Source: Klebsormidium nitens (lineage: Eukaryota; Plantae; Klebsormidiophyceae). From it: a stretch of 64,000 nt of DNA. Below the pieces are notes generated by a model. That model was not told where the DNA came from. It did not search any database and worked only from the letters and a program-made list of their open reading frames with translations. The position numbers and the translations under genes are program-made. Location of the stretch: the NCBI GenBank assembly GCA_000708835.1, contig DF237125.1, forward strand, positions 1-64,000. Direction: 5' to 3'. Below are positions 51,515 to 62,900 of the stretch, piece by piece (positions within the stretch are counted from its first letter, which is position 1; every line of letters begins with the position of its first letter).

Positions 51515-54500
51515 CACTGCATTAAGATCCTTCGATGGTCCTTTCATCCTTTTTTCCTTCGAGTTCGCAGTAGCTTTGTGGCTGCTAGACCGTACCTCGA
51601 GGCTTTCATGCTTGCAGCAGCCTGAGCAATCTGGGGCCTCTTTGAAGTAAACATGATAAGAGCAGTTGTTCATAGCGGTGGTTTTTCAGACCCATTTACA
51701 GAATATGCATGTTGAGGGGAGCAGTCGCAGGGTACAAATGTGTTGGCGTCTGGCGCATAGATGCAACCGAAGTCAACGCTTGAGTCCTGCCTCCTTTTTA
51801 TTTTTGAACATATCCGATTGAAACGGTCCCAAGGTATTACCCTTCAAGTCGTACAAGCTCTTTCGACGCGAGGAAGAAAGTAGAGAATCTGCTATATGCA
51901 ATACCTTGATCAGATCTCCAACGATATCGGAAGTTCCCCGGAAGTTCAAGGAACGTCACGGTGACGCTGCGTTTCTCTCAAGACAGCTTCGCTGTCAGGC
52001 TGCATGATATATACACGATGATGACGTTCCGGATCAGTGCCGTCATACAGAGGATGCAGTTTAGTGGCCGTTAGATACTGTATTTTGGTGGGCTCCATTC
52101 TGATTGTGTGGCCGCTTAATTGAGAGCTCATCGCACGGTGGAGCTCATGGCCCAAACACCATGAAGAGCATCATAAATACTTAGAGTCAAGGCATACAAA
52201 GTCCCTCGCACGAATCTGCAATCTGAAGACCGAATCGCCAGCGAGAATGTAAGAGTGAAACCGGCGCATGCTCTGTCCTATGTTCATGATATTACTCCAG
52301 CTGCCATTCCTGCTGTTCCTGCTTTACCATTCTAGACCCACAGATATGCACAAGAATCTTGACGACCAACAAGCATCGCCTCCTATGTAATGTTATCTTC
52401 ACTACTTCAGCGATCTTTCAGCACTCCTTGAGTCCCCAATGCCGGCGTCACTCAGATCAATTGCCGTCAACCCGAAACTGGTCAACCGATAGTCCTTGAG
52501 CTTGCCCCCGCCGAGCAGCAACGTCAAAAACGGCCATGTTCCTGAATGTTTGAAACGTTAGGCTCTTCTAGCTGATGTGGATTCTGAGCCAGTGGATTCA
52601 GGTGATCAACCCTTTGGCGAGGATGGCAGGGTACATACGCTGCGTGGTGCTATGCCCAGACGCCCCTGGCCCCAGCCTCTAGCACTTTTGCCTACTGCAT
52701 GAAGCACGGTACTGACGCGAAGAGTTACACACAGCAAAACAGACAGCAAAACAGACGAGCTGAGCGGGCCGGGTACATTCAACCTTCAATGTGCAGCGGC
52801 CGAGTTCCAAAAAGTTACACAAAGCAGAACAGAAAAGCTGAGCGGGTACCTTCAGGCTTCAATCTTCAATCTTCAATCTTCAATGTGCAGCCGCGTTCTG
52901 CAAAATTGCCTGCGAAAATCGGATGCGCTTCGATCGAGCTGGCGCCAGAACTAGCGCGCGGGGCCACCGGTCTGACCGGTACTTGGCATGAGACTCATGT
53001 GGCGGTCGAATGTCGACATTCAAACTTTGACCACGTGGCGCGCGCCCGGCCGGTTGTCTACCGAGCGCCATTTTCAGTTTTCAGGTAGGTAGGTACCTGT
53101 ATTACCTCAGGCAGCCTAGGTATCTAGCTTCGAAATCTTACCGGTCGAGATGTTCAGATTGCGGGAGCGTCCGCCAATTGGCAGATCAGGAGCGAGTGAA
53201 ATTCCGGTGTGCATAAAAGTATGTCGACACTTGAGTCCCTATCTATCCTACAGACAAGGGGATCCCGTACCTACGTACCAAGTAGACTCGAGCTTGCACT
53301 ACGGTGTACAATATCAGCAGCAACAGCAACATCAACTGGGATTCTGCATAGGGTCATGGCCACTTACCGGAGAAAGAGAGAATCACAATGACAATCTGTT
53401 TGTTAGATGACTACCAGAGCGTTGGCTAGGCCAACTCGAGTCAGTTAGTGTCGCTTGTGAGCGCACGTCCCTCGCTCACGGCTAGCTAGTCCCTGCCCAG
53501 CTTCGTGTGGGCGCTTGATTTGTTAAGTATCTACAAAGAAAATTGCAGCTTGTCTTCCGAAGAGTACTCCAAAGTTAGCCGATCAGGGTGAGCTTGTCTT
53601 CAGCGGCTGCCAGCGATCAACCAGCAACGTGGATGGGGACGGCCTTGTCAGCTAAATTATATATGAGACTGGAGACGCCCTGTGGATTTGGGGCGGCATG
53701 AGATTTTGGACCTGAGGTTTTCTTCTAAATTTGGAGGGACAAAGCGGCGCTGTTGCCAATACTAGGTAATAACCCGGTCTCTAACTGTTTTTGCAAGACT
53801 TGGCCGCTGTCTTCAATGCTGAAACCTTCCCTCTCACAAAAATGTGTTCTGTTCCGGATTCCCTATGTTTGGTAGTCATCCCGCTCAGAACGTCCGGCGG
53901 ATTACTTGGCTCACACATTTTCCTATGGGTTGCACATGGCTGCTCCTAGTGATTGTGCCTGCACAATCTCTGAATCTGTTCACAAGGTAAAGAGGGGGGC
54001 CAGCAAGGGCTTGATTTCCCGGTTGAATGACAATTAGAATTTTACTGTGATGGGTAACGTTGTATTCTATGTCGGCCACAGCTGGTGGGTTTTAAAGAAA
54101 GCAGCTTGACATGGCAGCGCACGCTTCTAGGACAGAGCAGGCACTGCAGCATACGGCCATGCCTTAAGTAGTCAGCGCAGATTTTGGATGGGTCAGTCTG
54201 CTTTGAGATGGGTTGGCAGATTCGCAAGGCCAGCACCAGGAAGCAACATGCCTTTTGGTGGATCACGATTCACCACTGGAGAGATATCTGTAGGTCAAGG
54301 ACAATGAACACCTCATGAGCTGGTCAACTTCAAACCAGACTGAGGAGCACTTTATGTCTCATTCCGCAATGCTTTATGCCTCCGTACATTAACACACACA
54401 GAAGCGTGTTGTGTTCCTATCACTTTACTAATCAGACGTATCTCGAGGCTAGATTATGGGGTCCGCAGATTTAGGAAGCTGCCCTGGTCTGTACGTTCCT

Positions 54501-54946
54501 GGTGAGGATTTGTTCCAAAGCTTCTGAAATGACCTTAAAAGCTGATCGTATTTTATCCACTTCAGGGACAGTGCCGGTACTACCTACCAAAAAAGCCTCT
54601 GTTTGCCAACGCAGTCATCGTTTTTATTCGCTCGGCACGTAAGCTACTCTAGAGGACAAGCAGAATACAGGAGCAAAGGGAGTGACACCAGGAGACGCTG
54701 CACCCGTTTCAGCCTACCAGCTTTCCGCAACAAAGAAGAGGAAGTCACCAACTTGGTGTTCTTTACCAGACAGGATATTCCAGTCCCTCATAGGGCTTCT
54801 TTCAGATCCTGCTGTAGCATGCTGCGTAGACCTCTGTCCCCAAAGACTTTACCTAAAGCACTGCCGCTCCTCTTGCAGAGACACCGACGGCAAAGGCCCT
54901 TTCTGTGCGACAACCCACAACTATCTGCCGCCAACTGACGCCCCCG

Positions 54947-57900
54947 ATGACGACACAAGGTCACTTGGTCGCCCTTTTCTGGCTGACGTCATTGGTTTTG
55001 CTGTGCCCGGTGGTTGTGTCTCAACCTCAGACGGCCGTAACTCTCTGTTCCGGCCAAGCCGGTGCCTGCGTGGCCCGCAACGGCAACCTTCCCGAGTTCC
55101 CATGGGACGCCCGGTGCGCGTGCTTAACCAAGGTGGTCAACCTAACCCTCGTTGAACAGGGCATCACGCGCCTGCCGGTAACGTGGGCCTCCCCGGGGGC
55201 TTTCCCTGAGCTGCGGCTCCTCAACCTCACCTCCAACAGCATCGCGGAGCTTCCCGTCGGGTGGGGTGCGCCGGGCGCGTTTCCCAAGCTTGCGCAGCTG
55301 TGGGTCAGTTACAACCGGGTGCAAATGCTCCCCATGGAGTGGGGTATTAACGGAGCGTTTCCCACGCTTGTCGAGCTGCGGCTCGGGACAAACGAGATTA
55401 CTTCCCTGCCCGATGCGCCGGCAGGCTCCTTGCCCTTCTTCCCCACGCTTCAGACGTTGACCTTTCCGAGGAACCGGATCACTGGGAGCCTGCCCGCGTC
55501 ATGGGGCCGACGGGGGGCCTTTTCCCAGCTCCAGCAGCTGTACTTGGCTTACAACCGCATTTCGGCGATCCCCGCATCGTGGGGCGTCTCGGGTTCATTT
55601 CCGCAGCTCCTAGATTTGGACCTGGACGACAACGGAATCTCCGCGCTTCCGGAAACCTGGGGTACTGGCGGCGGGTTTCCCAAACTCGAGTCCCTCACAT
55701 TGGACCAAAACCGGATCGCCGCGTTTCCTGCTTCTTGGACAACCAACACCACCGTGACGTTCCCGTCCCTGCAGCTGCTGACGGTGGCTGACAACCAGCT
55801 GACGTCACTGCCCGACAATTGGGGAAGCCCGTCCGCGCTCCGTTCGCTGCAGATACTGTCGCTAGACGGGAACCGCATCGCAGCCCTGCCGAGTGCTTGG
55901 GGGATCCCCCTTCGGTTTCCGCTGCTCGGGGAGCTGTTTCTTTCGCGGAACGCGATCGCAGCGGTGCCCGCCACGTGGACCACTCCGGGCGCGTTCCCGC
56001 TCCTCCAGAACCTCGTGCTGGACAACAACCGGCTGACGGAGGCTCCGGCGGTCAGTTCCGGTGCCACGTGGCGATTCCTGATCTCCCTGTCCCTGAGCGG
56101 AAACCGGATCGCCGAGCTGCCGGCAAGCTGGGGCGCGCGTGGGGTGTTCCTCAGCCTCCTGAATCTAGATTTAGGGAATAACAGCCTAACCCGGCTGCCT
56201 CCCGCTTGGCCCAGCCCAACCGCTTTCGCAAGTTTGTCTAATCTAGACATCTCGGGAGGGCAGCTGGAGAGCTTGCCCGACGCGTGGTTCGCGAACGGCT
56301 CCCTCTCCGATTTGTTCGTTCTCGACGCGTCGGGGAACCGTATCTCTGCGCTCCCGAGCGCGTGGGGGATCCCTGGAAGAGTGTGCAACGTGGTCGACTT
56401 AAATCTGGCGGACAACAAAATCGCCGCACTGCCCCCGAACTGGGGACTGAACGACACGTTCCCCTACCTTTTCAAGTGGAATTTGAGCAACAACCAGATG
56501 GAGGAGCTTCCGGCGTCCTTTAGCGACGGGCGATTTGACATACTGTGGTCCCTGGACTTGGCGGGCAATAGGATTCGCACGTTGCCGACCGAGTGGGGCT
56601 TTGATGGCGCCTTCCGAACGCTAGTTGCGCTCAACGTCAGCCGCAACAACGTCACGAAGATTCCCGATAGCTGGGCGGTTCAAAAGTCGGGGAACCGCTC
56701 CTTCGCGGTGAGATGCTTCTCTCGTTCCCTTTTTTGTTTGAAATTAGCAACCGTTGAATGCGTTCAACAACCTGACACGATCAGCTGAATTTGAATTGGA
56801 TTATGCATGAGCCCTTTCTTCTTCTTTCCGTATGTAGCCCAAGGGAAACATCAGGTCTCCACCGTGAGTTTGGAGCAACCTTTGAACCAGATTTTGACGT
56901 ACGTCGATTCTGACTGGAGCTACTTTACGAAAGATTGTATGCCTAAAGGGACAAGATGTGACGGTAACAAACACGTGTTTTTACGTTTTCGTACGCCTTC
57001 TTTCTTCAAACGCCCTTGAACAAATCAAAGCGGACCAACTTTCGCGCACTCTTTGACCGTCCGCGGCCTTCCCGTCCGCAGATCCTGGACGAGCTCAAGC
57101 TTTCGGACACGCCTGCACTCGCTGGCAGAAAGCTCGAGTCCGTCCTCCCGGGGTTTTGGACCAAGTGCATTGAGTCCGGCGCCTACGGATGCGCCGTCAA
57201 CTTCCTCGGTAGCAACCTGAGCACCCACGTGTCGGCTGACGTCAAGCGCCAAGTCTGCTTCGGCAACATCACGGTTCTCTTCCGCGGTCCGCCGGGATAC
57301 GAGCTTCCCCGGCGACCCAGCAAAGCTGTCGGCGGCGGACTCGTGCCCATCGTCCAGTTTGACGAAATCGATCTGGGCCCCGAGGGGGTCCATTTGACGG
57401 GGCTCCGGTTCCCCCCGCGCCCGGGCAACCTGTGCCGCAACGCGCGCGCCGCGCTCGTGATCGGCCTCATGTGGGGGGGCACCGGAGGGGCCCTTCTGTT
57501 GGGCGTGATCGTCCTGCGCGTGCGGCACGCGTTCAAGTCGTTCGAGGCCCCCGCCTCGGGGGGCGCGCGCGCGCACAGCTGGCACAAGGGCGCGCGCTTG
57601 TTCCTTTTCGGGCTCGGCGGCGCGGCGTGGCACGTGGTCGACTTAGCGCTCGACGCGCGCGTGCTGCGCGACGTGTGGATCCAGCCGCTCGACACGTGGG
57701 TCAAGTGGGTCCTGCTCGCGTTCATCGTTGCGCAATACGCTATCGCGGGGCTGTTCCTCGGGGCGTCGTGGTGGGCCGGCGCGTGGCGCTCGCCGCGCGG
57801 CGCGGCCGCGAAGCCGCGCGCCAACCGGTCACCCGTCGGTTTCCATTGGTGGCTCGTGGCAGATTACACATACTCCCACACAGACGCCCCGGCTTCGGTC

Positions 57901-58374
57901 AGCATTACGCAATTCTGCTGGGCGGTTGCCACGTGGCCGTTCGCGGCCGCGGCCGCGGTTATCTTAGACGCGGCCGCGATCGTCCTCCGGCTTGGCGTGC
58001 ATCCGGTGGTTGGGGGGAAGGTCGTTTCGCTGGACGCGTATGTTGCGGCGCGGGGCCTTATCGAGGAGCTGTTTGAGGCCGTTCCGCAGGCGATTCTGCA
58101 GAGCGCGCTGTATTTGCTCGGCAACTCCGCGGCGACTAACTATTACATCGACGACGCGATCTTCATCCCGTCGCTCGTATGGAGTCTGATGTCGCTTCTA
58201 AAGTGCCTTCTGGGCAAGTATAGGGACGCACTGGCCATAGGCAGTTTCGCCCCCAAAGCAGTGTGGCACGAGCTCAGGAACATGTGCCCCTTGTTTATCG
58301 ACCGTGCTGACGCGCGCGCACAGGAGGCGAACGCTGACGAAGGCGACTCGGAGCTGAAGGATTTATATCCTTGA
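54947..58374 (+). CDS. ~1017-aa membrane protein: signal peptide, ~20 26-aa LRRs, and a multi-pass XK-related-like domain
   Basis: Exon 1 54947-56707, phase-0 intron (GCG|GTGAG ... CCGCAG|ATC), exon 2 57082-58374. The junction completes an LRR (SFAILDELKLSDT). About 6 hydrophobic segments, with motifs VDLALD, IEELFEAVPQAILQ and SLVWSLMSL. Confidence 0.88.
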
Positions 58375-59922
58375 TAGTCTTGCTTGACGGGCTGCTTACG
58401 AATTAGCGGGGGACGTAGTAAATTCAAGGGAGCCTGCATGATTGATGTGCGGTCGACAGAACACGGGAGATGATGCTTGACAGGAAAGTTGACCTATAAG
58501 ATTGCTGGCCTGGTACGAATGAGTGGTTCCAAGTTGAAAAGGCACGAATTGTAAGATGAACGGGGAACAGATGATTGTCGTTGTCAGTGTTGCATAATCC
58601 GATCCCATCCGATCGTTTCTAGTCCATTTTGTTGCGTGAGCAAGTCTTATTCCACACTCTTATCCTCTTCGATCCACATTGTGTTCTTTCTAGCGGATTT
58701 TTTGAGTATGGTGGTCTGTATACAACGTCCTTATTCTCCCGGTCCGATATCTAGCTGGTGCATGGACAATAATATTGGCCGCGCCGACTCTATCGATTGC
58801 AGGCTATCGTATTTTGTAGTATTTAGATTGCTTTAGGCACTGCGAGTAGACCGTCCATCTCAACGCAAGACTTTCTCGGCCTTACAACTACTTTGAATCT
58901 GAGTGTGGCTGTGTTTGTTGGACAAGGGAGTCGGCCGCCGCGCCTATCTGACCGTACTCGGGCCTGCGAGCGCTCTTGCATTTGCAATCGGATCGTTAGG
59001 AGCATTGGATATGATTTGAGGTGCAAGGTATCTCATTATTGGCAGGTACTGTAAATAACCGGGTTTACGTCCATGCAGATCGATTGATCTAGCTCAGTCA
59101 ACAATCTCTAATCGAGCTGACTCATTTGCGCTATATAACTGGCCGCACGTAAGAGCCGCGTAAAATGTCGCGGATCGAATAGATGCAGGCCTGCGACCGG
59201 GTCAGTTATTGCTCCAAATTGCTTTCAGATGAAAATCGTAAAGATGCACATGGCCCATGGTGGTGCATTAATATTAATCGATATTGGCCATTGGCTCTCG
59301 AATCCATCGATCACTAATAAACAAAGCGGTCAATGCTTTGTGATGACCAATCCCCCGCGGCAAGTCGATCATCATACTGCCAGCACTATGCAATCGGCAC
59401 CTAAGGAGTGAGTGACAGGTTGATTACACCACTGATAGATCGGACATACAATTAACTTCATATTTCCGCTCAGTCAAACGTGGGGACGGCCGGGCCGTTG
59501 ATAACACACAGTACTGGCGTGAGATTCGATGAATATCCAATCACGACATTTTCAGATTCGCGACTTACTTTGCAATCACCCTGATGGAAGTTTTATGTAC
59601 ACAGGCGGTCACTCGAAATCTTCTTTCTGATTGACTAGCCGAAGGTCTAATCTACAGTTTTGCTGAACGCCATATGCTCACTAAACAACTGCAACGAAAC
59701 TGGTAAGTCCCCAGCAATTACAAATCTAAGCAAGCACATATTATGCTTCCAGTTCAAACAACTTTGCCTGGCAGCGGTTGGCATGAGTATTGCATGATGC
59801 CCATCTAACTGAGCATTATTCAACGCACCCTACGCTAACTCTCCGCTGCCTTCCGATACACTCAATCGAAATGCAACGATGCGTGCACAGATGCAGGGGA
59901 AGCTTCAATGAGTTCCAATAAC

Positions 59923-62900
59923 CTAGGCCAACTTAGCCATCCAGTCCAGTAGCGCTTTATTCGTCTCGGCGGGCGACTCGTCGTGCGGGCAGTGCCCGCT
60001 TTGCAAGCTCACTCTATCCGCTTTCGGATACAACTCCTGGATCCGGGCCGCTTTGCTCGGACCCATCCACGGGTCTAGGTCGCCCCACAATAACAGAAGC
60101 GGCATGCTTAACCGGGTTAGGAGCTTGTCTATGGTCGTTGACCCCGGACCGAGCATAACTTGCGTCACCAATCTGCATCAACAAGAGCAGTCTCAACAAA
60201 GGTATTCGAGCACGGAACAGGGAAAGTGACGGAAGATTTTGATAGAGGTCTTGAAGGCGTGAACAACCCTTCGAAGACTTTGCTCAAATAGCCGTTCACC
60301 CAGCGCAATATCCCCGGTTCGAAACTGATGCTTAGACCGTAAGACTGTCGTCGACTGCCGTGTACGGAGGAGACTCGCAAGAGGACTTTCAAAAGAGCAC
60401 AACATAAGAGCACAACATAAGCGGCAAGAACAACTCTGTAAACATACTTTTTGTTTGTTGAAGCGCTTCACTTAAAAGCACATCTGACGGCATCGACGAA
60501 ACGCTACAACCCGCTACAACCTTTGATTCAGGAATATATTTCAGATACTTGCCCTCTACGAACCCAGAATCCCCTTATCTTCCAGCGCAGACGGATTGGT
60601 CTTCAAACAACTCTCCCCTACGGATCCAATACTTCGTGCGCTCCTCAAGTGACACAAAACTCTACGACCGCTGCAAAGTAAATGTAACTCTCGCTTCCAA
60701 GAATCAGTGTTAAGCAACAGGTTAGAATTACTCTCGCTTCCAAAAATCAATGTTAAGCAATAGGTGCGAACTGCGCACCTGTAGTAGACCTCCGCGGCGT
60801 TCGGACCGTATGCAGGCTGGGTAATGGAGTCGACCAAGTAATCGTCTACGTTTGTCTTATCAATGTACACCTGTAAATACCATGAACATGAATGAGCTGT
60901 GGCCAATCCAGAACCTGTTCCGCTCATGAGTTAACTGGATCGCTACGTATGGTGTTTCAGAGCAAACCATTTTCGAGAATCAGCTCCTTGCTGCACTTTA
61001 ACAGAGAAGAATATGATACGGACGAGAGTGAACGTCTTTCAAACACATGAGGATATTCTGCACGATATCCACTGCAGACCCAGAGAATTCCTTCACATTT
61101 CAAAGGAGCAACGTAAGCCACCAGAGTCGAACGGCAACGTCGTAACAGGTCCAGCAAAGCACACTTTTTTTTTGGGAAACTTTGAACGAAGGCCTCACCG
61201 GTGCAGCAGGACAAACTTTCTCTGGGACAAACTTAGCAGCCGCCGAATTCGACCAGAGCTAACGACGAAAAGCCCGTACCTGCCGCAACACGCTTCTTAC
61301 ACGCGTCGGGAGGCGCGCCTGCTTAAACGCGGAGGGCAACATTTCCCTGCTGCTCTCCAGTCCTACGATTCTTAAACCTTCTCGAAATCTTGACTACACT
61401 ACCCCCCTAGCAGCGCTGAAGACAATCAGAACGAACCGAAACCAGCGTACCTGTTGCAACACGCTTTTCACGCGCGTCGGGAGGCGCGCCTGGTAAAACG
61501 CGAAGAGCAGCATCCCGCGCTGAGCGGCCTGTTTCACAGGAGCCGTCAGCCGATCCATCATCGTCTCCGGCTGCTGCGCGGACGCAAGATCGTCGACGTC
61601 CGCTTCGTCCAACTGCGGACAGAGAATTAATAAAATCTAACGATTGAGATAAAACAAATGATGACGGTCTCAATCAGGAAGAATAAGAGCCAGGAAAAAG
61701 AAGCTCCCGGAAAAAAGTAGAACCCTAACCCGACGAGTGACCCGCTCCGCACCCGTACCCACCTCTACACCCCGACCCTTAACCCAACCGTCCGCGGTTG
61801 GCGAGCTGCTTTCCCTGCCGCTTGATAACATGATTTAGGTCCTCAAAGGCATTCACTTTATGGAAAGTTTGTTGATACGGGTAACTTTTGGATTATTCCA
61901 TCGATCAAAATCGGCGAGACCCGTGCACGAAAGCAGGAACCCGGTATGCGCTCAACACCCGCAACAACACTGCCGGCCTCAACAGTAACCTCAGCCGACA
62001 TCAGGCGCCCCTCGCGCTACTCACTTCTCAGAGATTCATACTCATTTTCTTGCCGATCTGAGACAGGATTGAAACACTGCCAAACTCTTTGAGAATTTTA
62101 CGGCCAGGCCCTATATTGAAAAGAGTCAAGGGTTTAAGAGTCGCGTGGATCCAAAGACGTACGTCAACTTCGTCGGACGGAAGGAGTATCTGCATTGAAC
62201 TTAGGAAAAACTTTCGTGATTGCAATGTCCTGACAAGCTCTCTGCGCCGTTCAGAAACTGAAGATCAAGTCTCAAGCGCCGCCGCTCTACTACGCAAGTC
62301 TGACCACCCCAAGTAATTCACAGCGGCACGACTATATACGGAAAATTCTACAAACTAAGGTTTTCGTGCAATCACTGATCAAAAACATCCGGGCACACGC
62401 TCCAGATTCCTGTGCTGGTTTTGGGCTCTTTTCCCTGGCAACAACAAAAGGAAGGTTCGACGTCGTCGCAAAACAGCAAAAGAAGGGGCGCTTTTTTAGG
62501 GACACCGCCACCTCACAAAAATGACGTCACGCACCTCCTGGGCGACCTCGCTTCCGGCAACAACGGGCGGCTTCTCGTCCTTGTCAGCGAATTTGCCGGC
62601 CACGTTCAGGAGGACGAGCCCCTTAACCAGTTCCGGGTTCTTGGCCGCGGTCGACAGAACGGTGAAGCCTCCGATACTGCAGCCACGTGGCATGTATTCT
62701 CGCCCTGATTTTTGCGCTGCTTGACTTACGGATGTTCGGCTTGACTCACGAATGTTCAGGGAACGAGCTGTTGCGCGCACACAGGAGTCAAGTTTCTAAC
62801 AACCGAGATGTACGGCTACTGACCGCTTGAGAGTGAGAGACTGATTGCTTTCAGATTAACTAGAAGCTTTCATAGTGCTCAGAGATTCGTGCTGACCTGT

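Follow-up and report, generated by a model that had tools for sequence, protein, structure and literature searches.

According to the prevailing view, signaling by surface receptors in plants and related algae proceeds via kinases or via co-receptors that carry a kinase. In the animal proteins Xkr8 and Xkr9, the C-terminal tail plugs a cytoplasmic pocket, from which it is released by caspase or phosphorylation. The XK family to which these proteins belong is built of two structurally related repeats (ND and CD), which together comprise eight TM helices plus inserted helices (PMC8298096, PMC12334663). Each of the two repeats of XKR9 contains four TM helices and one inserted helix. TM1 and TM3 carry acidic residues, which were called "a characteristic feature," and a conserved PQL sequence marks a kink in TM3 (PMC8298096). 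Scrambling by Xkr8 requires D26, D30, K134, E137, E141, and R183, which are located in α1, α4, and α5, i.e., all in the N-terminal repeat (PMC8500837). The family has been described as conserved "from nematodes to humans" (PMC12334663).

Here, we describe a gene in a window of 64,000 nucleotides of DNA of the streptophyte alga Klebsormidium nitens, the whole stretch that was analyzed. Its product is best explained as a leucine-rich repeat (LRR) surface receptor with a membrane module that is distantly related to the N-terminal repeat of XK/Xkr proteins and that would produce a kinase-independent output within the membrane. We give this reading, in which the mechanism is inferred, a probability of roughly 0.68.

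Gene Structure and Transcript

The gene is intact, transcribed, and correctly spliced, and all its features are on the forward (+) strand. The coding sequence (54947-56707 + 57082-58374) runs from the ATG at 54947 to the stop codon at 58372-58374 and encodes 1017 amino acids. It is preceded by a non-coding 5'UTR exon, the 3' end of which is located at 53734-53765. A loose-end consensus of four runs matches 53734-53763 exactly, with a GT at 53766; the transcript contigs reach up to ~444 nt upstream of the junction, of which the 30 nt next to the junction were mapped to the window. The 5'UTR intron (53766-54878; GT..AG, 1113 nt) has the acceptor ...ttgcag ending at 54878. Exon 1 (54879-56707) consists of 68 nt of 5'UTR and the codons for residues 1-587; transcript contigs cover it from 54877 to 56706 with zero differences to the window. 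The coding intron (56708-57081; GT..AG, 374 nt, phase 0) is represented by a joint 56706>57081 in contigs of four runs, and an intron of 378 nt is found at the same position in the K. nitens homologue GAQ93027.1. Exon 2 (57082-58374) contains the remainder of the coding sequence up to the stop codon and is followed by a 3'UTR (58375-58624), in which the contig ends lie between 58543 and 58624; the transcript contigs stop ~190-250 nt past the stop codon.

Because the spliced mRNA contains an in-frame TAA 108 nt upstream of the ATG at 54947 and no ATG in between, this position is the start codon. An in-frame upstream extension of the coding sequence was considered and rejected on the basis of the same TAA codon. 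A second copy of the gene was not found within the 64-kb window by tblastn.

Contigs of 1.6-3.8 kb from four public runs cross the splice with the 374-nt intron removed, and in three of these runs, the two coding exons are contained in full in one contig. Thus, the LRRs and the membrane part are encoded on one mRNA, as the preliminary description of the locus had presumed when it treated them as a fusion. The fusion might have been an artifact of two neighboring genes or of a pseudogene, with the two parts on separate transcripts. Separate transcripts had been named in the preliminary description as an outcome that would refute it. Nothing was found in favor of this explanation, and it is refuted by the spliced contigs, which span both coding exons in three runs and cross the splice in the fourth, with the GT..AG intron out in all four. 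The reading frame is intact across 1017 codons, the overall dN/dS is well below 1 (0.22, see below), and the position of the intron is shared with GAQ93027.1. The probability of such an artifact is close to nil.

Ectodomain and Overall Architecture

The product is a type-I membrane glycoprotein of 1017 amino acids. The signal peptide (residues 1-25; 54947-55021) is marked by an N-terminal hydropathy maximum of 2.43. It is followed by 20 LRRs (residues 63-587; 55133-56707), which were recognized by the Pfam families LRR_4 (E 2.8e-43) and LRR_8 (E 2.2e-40). These repeats conform to the consensus LxxLxLxxNxIxxLPxxWGxxGAFPx and are 25-28, mostly 26, residues long. The extracellular juxtamembrane stalk (residues 588-707; 57082-57441) contains four family-conserved cysteines, at positions 616, 624, 646, and 705 (alignment A4), and is predicted to form a small α/β unit in an AlphaFold model of exon 2 (model 2, see below).

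C-terminal to the stalk, six hydrophobic or amphipathic helices are found, i.e., TM0 at residues 708-734 and five helices at ~759-786, 792-819, 862-890, 907-934, and 945-968. TM0 (57442-57522; hydropathy 1.92) is the helix with which the receptor crosses the membrane; in model 2, it corresponds to helix 123-151, in a block with a pLDDT of 95-98. The other five constitute what we call the half-XK module. The protein ends with a cytoplasmic acidic tail of 49 residues (residues 969-1017 and the stop codon; 58225-58374), which contains no further domain, is poorly conserved in the family, and has a low pLDDT. No kinase family was recognized in exon 2 by Pfam (E ≤ 10), and the mRNA ends ~200 nt past the stop codon. 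The layout is the one that had been proposed at first sight, with a signal peptide, ~20 LRRs, a Cys-containing stalk, ~6 helices, and no kinase.

Family and Selection

The protein is a member of a family of at least 54 protein clusters (E ≤ 1e-3), and LRRs were detected in 20 of the 48 members scanned. All named members are from Klebsormidium (K. nitens and K. subtile), whilst the metagenomic relatives (groups P0037, P0043, P0050, and P0052) are encoded on contigs from ENA and JGI metagenomes and from NCBI assembly GCA_030012865.1. The family is expanded in Klebsormidium, and this locus is not the only one with such a design. A literature search yielded no description of a combination of LRRs with a half-XK module or of any family member, and no paper linking XK-related proteins with Klebsormidium, or Xkr8 with LRRs and algae. 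Public annotations in the family, i.e., "L domain-like superfamily," "hypothetical," and, for one paralogue, "FLS2 kinase," are uninformative or wrong; the paralogue GAQ78274.1 is annotated "FLS2" in GenBank.

In a comparison with the closest K. nitens homologue, dN/dS was 0.22 overall, 0.13 in the module, 0.16 in the stalk, and 0.23 in the tail. Within the LRRs, it amounted to 0.57 at the x positions of the β-face and to 0.17 at the other positions. These ratios show purifying selection, whilst the face of the LRRs predicted to bind a ligand evolves fast. The combination of such a face with a constrained module is a pattern like that of receptors.

Resemblance of the Membrane Module to XK/Xkr Proteins

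The half-XK module (residues 759-968; 57595-58224) consists of TM1, TM2, an IH1-like helix, TM3, and TM4, as delineated with an AF2 model, VIA-align, and Pfam. The preliminary description had reported an XK/Xkr-like membrane domain and had suggested a Pfam search and a comparison of predicted and solved structures. In the Pfam search, XK-related (PF09815) was the sole match on exon 2 (E 0.056, 12.9 bits). The score was 13.9 bits for the 236-aa module and reached 19.9 bits (E 4e-4) for a 93-aa piece comprising TM3 and TM4, which matched positions 115-186 of the profile (337 positions). XK-related was also the top Pfam family over the domains of the family members (best E 1.8e-4), only three to four of which matched it at all. 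Thus, XK-related is the only family indicated, but the three scores of this protein, at best 19.9 bits, are below the gathering threshold of 24.8 bits. Searches among PDB sequences with the family HMM profiles A2 and A3 retrieved no Xkr chains at E ≤ 10, and a phmmer search with exon 2 gave a chance PPR match alone. A feature search of the ESM Atlas returned a PF09815-containing cluster at rank 4 (score 0.84), which is to be taken as a lead and not as evidence.

For the structural comparison, two AlphaFold models were made without templates, one of the module (model 1, AF2; pLDDT 81.5, pTM 0.76) and one of all of exon 2, based on a different alignment (model 2; pLDDT 77.9, pTM 0.80), and these were compared with 48,161 solved chains. 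With model 1, VIA-align ranked XKR9 first (Z 10.2, rmsd 3.4 Å over 153 residues, chain 4-190), XKR4 second (Z 9.3), and XKR8 twelfth. In a second look, four Xkr chains occupied ranks 1-4 with Z-scores of 10.6, 10.2, 9.0, and 7.6, followed by 6.5 for the next chain. With model 2, XKR9, XKR4, and XKR8 were found at ranks 1-3 of the 48,161 chains (Z 10.4, 9.3, and 8.0; next 7.3). Thus, the predicted fold does align with the Xkr structures. Over the various runs, Z was 10.2-10.6 for XKR9, with an rmsd of 3.4-3.8 Å over 153-160 residues, and 7.6-9.0 for XKR8; a Z of ~10 is inside the range that helical bundles may reach according to the warning of VIA-align, and a designed helix bundle scored 8.8. 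Foldseek with model 1 gave XKR8 as the top hit (probability 0.95, TMq 0.46) with a non-significant E of 0.3, and three further Xkr chains within the top 21, whilst with the 430-aa model 2 it gave noise alone. A fold search of the ESM Atlas produced unrelated bacterial clusters (TM ≤ 0.34).

The structural alignments are confined to residues 4-190 of XKR9, i.e., to the N-terminal repeat. The second repeat is absent, as the protein ends 49 residues after TM4, and the part of the fold that is not present includes helices lining the hydrophobic cleft of Xkr8. Hence, the N-terminal-repeat fold, the motifs discussed below, and the sole Pfam pointer uphold part of the original claim, but with a C-terminal repeat missing, a sub-threshold Pfam score, and profiles that do not find Xkr proteins, we consider the module a distant half-XK relative and not an XK-family protein.

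The motifs on which the original claim was based were all found in place, as were the start and stop codons. TM1 contains the sequence VDLALD (residues 773-778; 57637-57654), in which D774 and D778 are at positions i and i+4, a spacing that matches that of D26 and D30 in Xkr8. In the family alignment, D778 is conserved as D in 19 of 26 sequences and D774 in 15 of 26. TM3 contains the motif R911-x3-E915-x3-E919-x2-P922-Q923-x3-Q927 (58051-58101), within which residues 914-927 (58060-58101) read IEELFEAVPQAILQ. In a register derived from the motif spacing and the Pfam alignment, it corresponds to K134/E137/E141/Q145 of Xkr8 and the PQL kink of XKR9. Within the family, P922 is conserved in 31 of 32 members, Q923 in 28, Q927 in 29, and both E/D915 and R911 in 25. 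Since E919 is replaced by R in 12 of the 32, one "essential" acid of Xkr8 is not kept family-wide. The sequence SLVWSLMSL comprises residues 951-959. The hallmarks of the XK family, i.e., acidic residues on TM1 and TM3 and the PQ kink in TM3, are present, with A for L in PQL. Thus, the module keeps the buried acidic/polar network of the XK N-terminal repeat, with D-x3-D on TM1 and R/E/E plus the PQ kink on TM3; in Xkr8, the residues that scrambling depends on are part of this network.

Alternatively, the module could be a lineage-specific helical bundle that became XK-like by convergence and that serves, without translocating lipids, as a multipass anchor or oligomerization device of an LRR protein involved in adhesion or cell-wall sensing. 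Klebsormidium grows as filaments, and LRR proteins on cell surfaces can mediate adhesion. The sub-threshold Pfam score, the failure of the family profiles to retrieve an Xkr sequence, the Z-scores of 8-9 of helical bundles against unrelated chains, and the missing second repeat would all be consistent with this option. However, all three Xkr representatives rank 1-3 among the 48,161 chains when the independent model 2 is used, and four Xkr chains rank 1-4 in the second look. Furthermore, the Pfam match and the structural alignment point to the same helices, and the motifs are located where the Xkr hallmarks are. Conserved D, E, R, and Q residues within helices and a dN/dS of 0.13 are also not what one would expect of a plain anchor. 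We therefore consider convergence unlikely, and, judged from the predicted models, the resemblance to XK/Xkr proteins is specific and would reflect homology.

Proposed Mechanism and Significance

If the protein is a surface receptor with a half-XK module, as we favor, it would presumably be located in the plasma membrane, and the module would produce the output inside this membrane. Binding of a ligand, or ligand-driven pairing of ectodomains, may alter how TM0 and the module are packed or may join two modules. The altered packing or pairing could then change lipid translocation, or a related handling of lipids or ions, at the plasma membrane. The protein might then function as a ligand-gated scramblase or channel, as the preliminary description had suggested. 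The combination of an ectodomain, a single TM helix, and an XK-like bundle in one chain would mirror the non-covalent pairs of Basigin or Neuroplastin with Xkr8.

A more far-reaching, and quite improbable, version of this idea is that the half-XK module represents a surviving single-repeat form of the XK scramblase fold. Pairing of the ectodomains by a ligand would then join two halves into a receptor-gated scramblase resembling the two-repeat proteins, and the animal XK proteins would have arisen by duplication of such a unit. A further improbable option is that the module is a true half-XK relative that signals rather than scrambles, either by recruiting a cytosolic partner or as a unit that binds or conducts ions. 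Half of the XK fold is missing in the algal module, and XK works with the lipid-transfer protein VPS13A, to which it binds (PMC9436381). On the other hand, a partner or a motif for such a function was not found, and the short cytoplasmic tail shows poor conservation and was modeled with low confidence.

If the favored reading, i.e., an LRR receptor with output inside the membrane, is correct, a conserved, expanded, and expressed family in which an LRR ectodomain is wired to an in-membrane module would generate its output by a different logic, and this in a lineage near the origin of the land plants. A half-size XK relative outside animals would also widen the range of the XK fold. Such a relative would provide a natural test case for the way in which scramblases with two repeats originated and for the half in which the lipid path is located; all Xkr8 residues essential for scrambling belong to the half that is kept in the algal module.

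Comparison With Known Systems

The module shares with XK/Xkr proteins (XKR8, XKR9, XKR4, XK, and CED-8; PF09815) a predicted succession of TM1, TM2, an inner-leaflet helix, a kinked hydrophilic TM3, and TM4, predicted cytoplasmic N- and C-termini, a D-x3-D pair on TM1, and E-x3-E-x2-PQ on TM3. It differs in having one repeat of four TM helices and one inserted helix instead of eight TM helices plus re-entrant helices, in PQA for PQL, and in an R at the position equivalent to E141 in many relatives. The algal protein has an acidic tail of 49 residues, but a caspase-cleaved regulatory tail is not evident. Furthermore, its module follows a large LRR ectodomain and an additional TM helix in the same chain. 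Whereas the family treated in the papers cited is an animal one, the host here is a streptophyte alga.

As in the complexes of Xkr8 with Basigin or Neuroplastin (PMC8500837), a type-I single-pass glycoprotein with a repeat ectodomain has its TM helix together with an XK-type bundle. However, the elements are covalently connected in one chain in the algal protein, the ectodomain is composed of LRRs instead of Ig domains, and the bundle is half the size.

With plant LRR-RLPs and LRR-RLKs, such as FLS2, the protein has in common a signal peptide, a long LRR array, a Cys-containing juxtamembrane region, a TM helix, and an LRR β-face that evolves faster. It lacks the cytoplasmic kinase domain of LRR-RLKs, and, where LRR-RLPs have a short tail, its TM0 is followed by a conserved multipass module of ~280 aa. 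Finally, whereas the plant-specific LRR is a 24-mer, LxxLxLxxNxLSGxIPxxLGxLxx, the algal repeats are 26-mers with LPxxWGxxGAFP as their second half.

Gene structure and expression

On the forward strand, the long open reading frames 54905-56788 and 57016-58374 differ in frame, and a canonical intron connects them into one LRR receptor gene with its CDS at 54947-56707 and 57082-58374. The last bases of exon 1 (...TTCGCG, to 56707) precede the donor GTGAG, and the intron, of phase 0, closes with the acceptor ...CCGCAG at 57081. The spliced CDS comprises 1017 codons, from the ATG at 54947 to the stop codon at 58372-58374, and the G+C content of exons is 0.60-0.74 vs. ~0.47 in flanks and introns. 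The ATG at 54947 was confirmed as the start, since an in-frame TAA is located 108 nt upstream in the spliced mRNA without an ATG in between.

The LRR part and the membrane part belong to one expressed gene. Contigs of four public transcript runs, which carry four study labels and two organism labels between them, match the locus with 0-1 differences and cross the spliced joint, so that the alternative of separate transcripts failed. Both coding exons are spanned by a single contig (3.5-3.8 kb) in each of three runs: it covers 54877-56706, leaves out 374 nt with GT..AG ends, and resumes over 57081-58543/58575. In the fourth run, the same joint occurs at depth 107, together with a faint unspliced piece (depth 7). 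In addition, 0.88 of the sampled words of a 3501-nt query were present in ten runs, which is the value predicted by removal of the 374-nt intron. An unspliced contig of one run (X1; 56678-57043, exon 1 into the coding intron; depth 7.4 vs. 107-128 for spliced contigs) is explained either by intron retention (pre-mRNA) or by traces of genomic DNA in the library.

Four transcript contigs extend 5' of 54877. Since the extension maps to 53734-53763, where the genome continues with GT, the gene has a spliced 5'UTR exon and a 5'UTR intron of 1113 nt (53766-54878, + strand). The 5' leader is long (53320-54946), with ~444 nt upstream of the junction in the contigs. If this upstream exon forms one uninterrupted genomic stretch, it contains six uORFs of 5-22 codons, which may exert translational control. 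Downstream, the next ORF, on the - strand (59923-60171), ends with a motif typical of the C terminus of the alpha/beta-hydrolase fold (...LLLWGDLDPW...GHCPHDE...) and probably represents the 3'-terminal exon of a neighboring, convergently oriented gene.

Architecture and topology of the protein

The signal peptide, ~20 LRRs, Cys-containing stalk and hydrophobic helices of the preliminary description were all recovered by hydropathy, Pfam and repeat analysis. The signal peptide (residues 1-25), which directs the ectodomain into the secretory pathway, is followed by an N-cap with Cys (26-62), 20 LRRs (63-587; Pfam LRR_4, E 2.8e-43), mostly of 26 residues with the pattern LxxLxLxxNxIxxLPxxWGxxGAFPx, and a stalk (588-707) with four Cys (616, 624, 646, and 705). 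Then follow TM0 (708-734), a basic cytoplasmic loop (735-758), TM1 and TM2 (about 759-786 and 792-819), a long basic loop (820-861), a hydrophobic kinked helix (862-890), the hydrophilic helix TM3 (907-934), TM4 (945-968), and an acidic tail (969-1017). Of 13 N-x-S/T sites, 12 are located in the ectodomain, and the charge distribution agrees with an ectodomain outside, TM0 running out-to-in, an in-out-in passage, a helix inserted from the inside, and again an in-out-in passage. The stalk, TM0 and the module (759-968) form one co-conserved unit of ~400 aa in the family alignment (A4), and the number of LRRs preceding it varies.

A catalytic cytoplasmic domain is absent. The claimed lack of a kinase was confirmed: Pfam matched exon 2 to XK-related only (E 0.056, 12.9 bits; exon-2 residues 312-384 on profile positions 114-188 of 337), and the transcript contigs terminate 170-250 nt past the stop codon, so there is no further exon and no kinase downstream.

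Relationship of the membrane module to the XK family

XK-related is thus the only family indicated for the TM region, and the 93-aa TM3-TM4 piece reached E 4e-4 and 19.9 bits, below the 24.8-bit cut-off. Over the domains of the family members, XK-related was the commonest Pfam family (3 of 32 members; 4 of 46 in another set) and also had the best E-value (1.8e-4, in the first set); the present protein is among the most XK-like members by Pfam score. Family HMMs did not find Xkr chains among PDB sequences, which counts against XK likeness.

The 236-aa module was modeled with AlphaFold2, using no templates and an alignment of 32 family members in which XK proteins were absent; this model (model 1) had a pLDDT of 81.5 and a pTM of 0.76. 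Its best Foldseek match in the PDB was human XKR8 (E 0.3, probability 0.95, TMq 0.46); the top 21 also contained XKR8 7dce and XKR9 7p14 and 7p16, with unrelated entries of the list at ≤0.30. Model 2, of all 430 exon-2 residues and from a different alignment, had a pLDDT of 77.9 and a pTM of 0.80. A set of 48,161 representative chains was scanned exhaustively with VIA-align; the absolute Z values of the Xkr matches fall in the caution range for helical proteins. For model 1, the leading chains were XKR9 (rank 1, Z 10.2, rmsd 3.4 Å over 153 residues, chain 4-190) and XKR4 (rank 2, Z 9.3), with XKR8 at rank 12 (Z 7.6); in a second look, four Xkr chains took ranks 1-4 (Z 10.6, 10.2, 9.0, and 7.6; next 6.5), and for model 2, XKR9, XKR4 and XKR8 were ranks 1, 2, and 3 (Z 10.4, 9.3, and 8.0; next 7.3), with residues 168/170-387 aligned on XKR9 4-190. 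The helices might instead have converged on this fold as a multipass anchor of an adhesive LRR protein, which we consider rather unlikely: for these predicted structures, repeated top ranks of one small family, in the register of the Pfam match, are hard to ascribe to chance. The proposed XK-like fold was therefore retained for the first repeat, the only part aligned.

In XKR9, the related repeats ND and CD each comprise four TM helices plus a helix inserted in the inner leaflet (Straub et al., PMC8298096). Scrambling by Xkr8 requires D26 and D30 (alpha1), K134, E137 and E141 (alpha4), and R183 (alpha5) (Sakuragi et al., PMC8500837), all of them on N-terminal-repeat helices. The algal TM1 carries D774 and D778 (i, i+4) and TM3 carries R911-x3-E915-x3-E919-x2-P922-Q923, with the spacings of D26/D30 and E137/E141/Q145. 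The buried polar network is largely conserved. Among 32 relatives, P922 is kept in 31, Q923 in 28, Q927 in 29, G934 in 32, E/D915 and R911 each in 25, D883 in 27, and D944 in 28, and D778 is D in 19 of 26 (otherwise N, Q or S). The XK motifs noted earlier thus match in spacing, but position 919 alternates between E (11/32) and R (12/32).

Taken together, we estimate at roughly 0.8 the probability that the module is a distant homolog of the first XK repeat. It falls outside the XK family as defined, because it lacks the second repeat and scores under the curated threshold.

Relatives and selection

The closest public protein is GAQ93027.1 of K. nitens ("L domain-like superfamily protein," 1020 aa, 84% identity over exon 2), whose gene has an intron of 378 nt at the same position. 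Identity amounts to 72% in the LRRs, 88% in the stalk, 93% in TM0, 84% in the module, and 65% in the tail. Purifying selection is evident from the Nei-Gojobori dN/dS of the pair (overall 0.22, dS 0.67; module 0.13, TM0 plus loop 0.15, stalk 0.16, LRRs 0.25), a pattern indicating that both genes are functional. Within the LRRs, dN/dS was 0.57 at the x positions of the beta-strand face vs. 0.17 elsewhere. In these sequence comparisons, the membrane unit is most constrained and the putative ligand-binding face least, as in receptor families.

When 1.84 billion representatives were scanned exhaustively with phmmer, 54 clusters matched at E ≤ 1e-3. All members with an organism name are from Klebsormidium (K. 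nitens or K. subtile), and more distant ones are located on metagenomic or genomic contigs. In a Pfam scan of 48 members, LRR families were found in 20, and the families seen were LRR types, Sel1 (1 member) and XK-related (1 member); no kinase family was found, including in GAQ78274.1 (K. nitens; P0016). The GenBank name of the latter, "LRR receptor-like serine/threonine-protein kinase FLS2," was apparently transferred on the basis of similarity in the LRRs. One relative (P0034) has Sel1 repeats C-terminal to the module (residues about 190-290), and in another (P0046; 997 aa, JGI metagenome contig) the conserved TM3-TM4 block lies mid-protein; these may be other architectures of the module or merged gene calls. 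A distant subgroup on megabase-scale contigs, i.e., L007 (GCA_030012865.1, JASCQU010009586.1) and the ENA metagenome contigs L001-L003, has PT for PQ in TM3 and a long insert ahead; its source would show how far the module extends outside Klebsormidium.

Possible function and novelty

The protein would be a receptor in the plasma membrane with the membrane module itself as the effector; ligand-driven rearrangement or pairing would alter lipid translocation or related lipid/ion handling. Dimerization has been linked to Xkr activation (PMC12334663), and the partner of Xkr8 is the single-pass glycoprotein Basigin (PMC8500837). Since the retained half bears the Xkr8 scrambling residues, a fused "Basigin-like helix + half-XK," active as a dimer, is plausible by this analogy. 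Lipid scrambling by the module is possible though doubtful, and the full model of a receptor-gated, dimer-reconstituted scramblase is improbable. Likewise improbable is a half-XK that binds partners or ions and does not move lipids.

No paper on XK-related proteins with Klebsormidium, or on Xkr8 with LRR and algae, was found in the literature searched. The LRR receptor ectodomain and the XK-type fold are each known in kind; their combination, the half-size module and the lineage are new.
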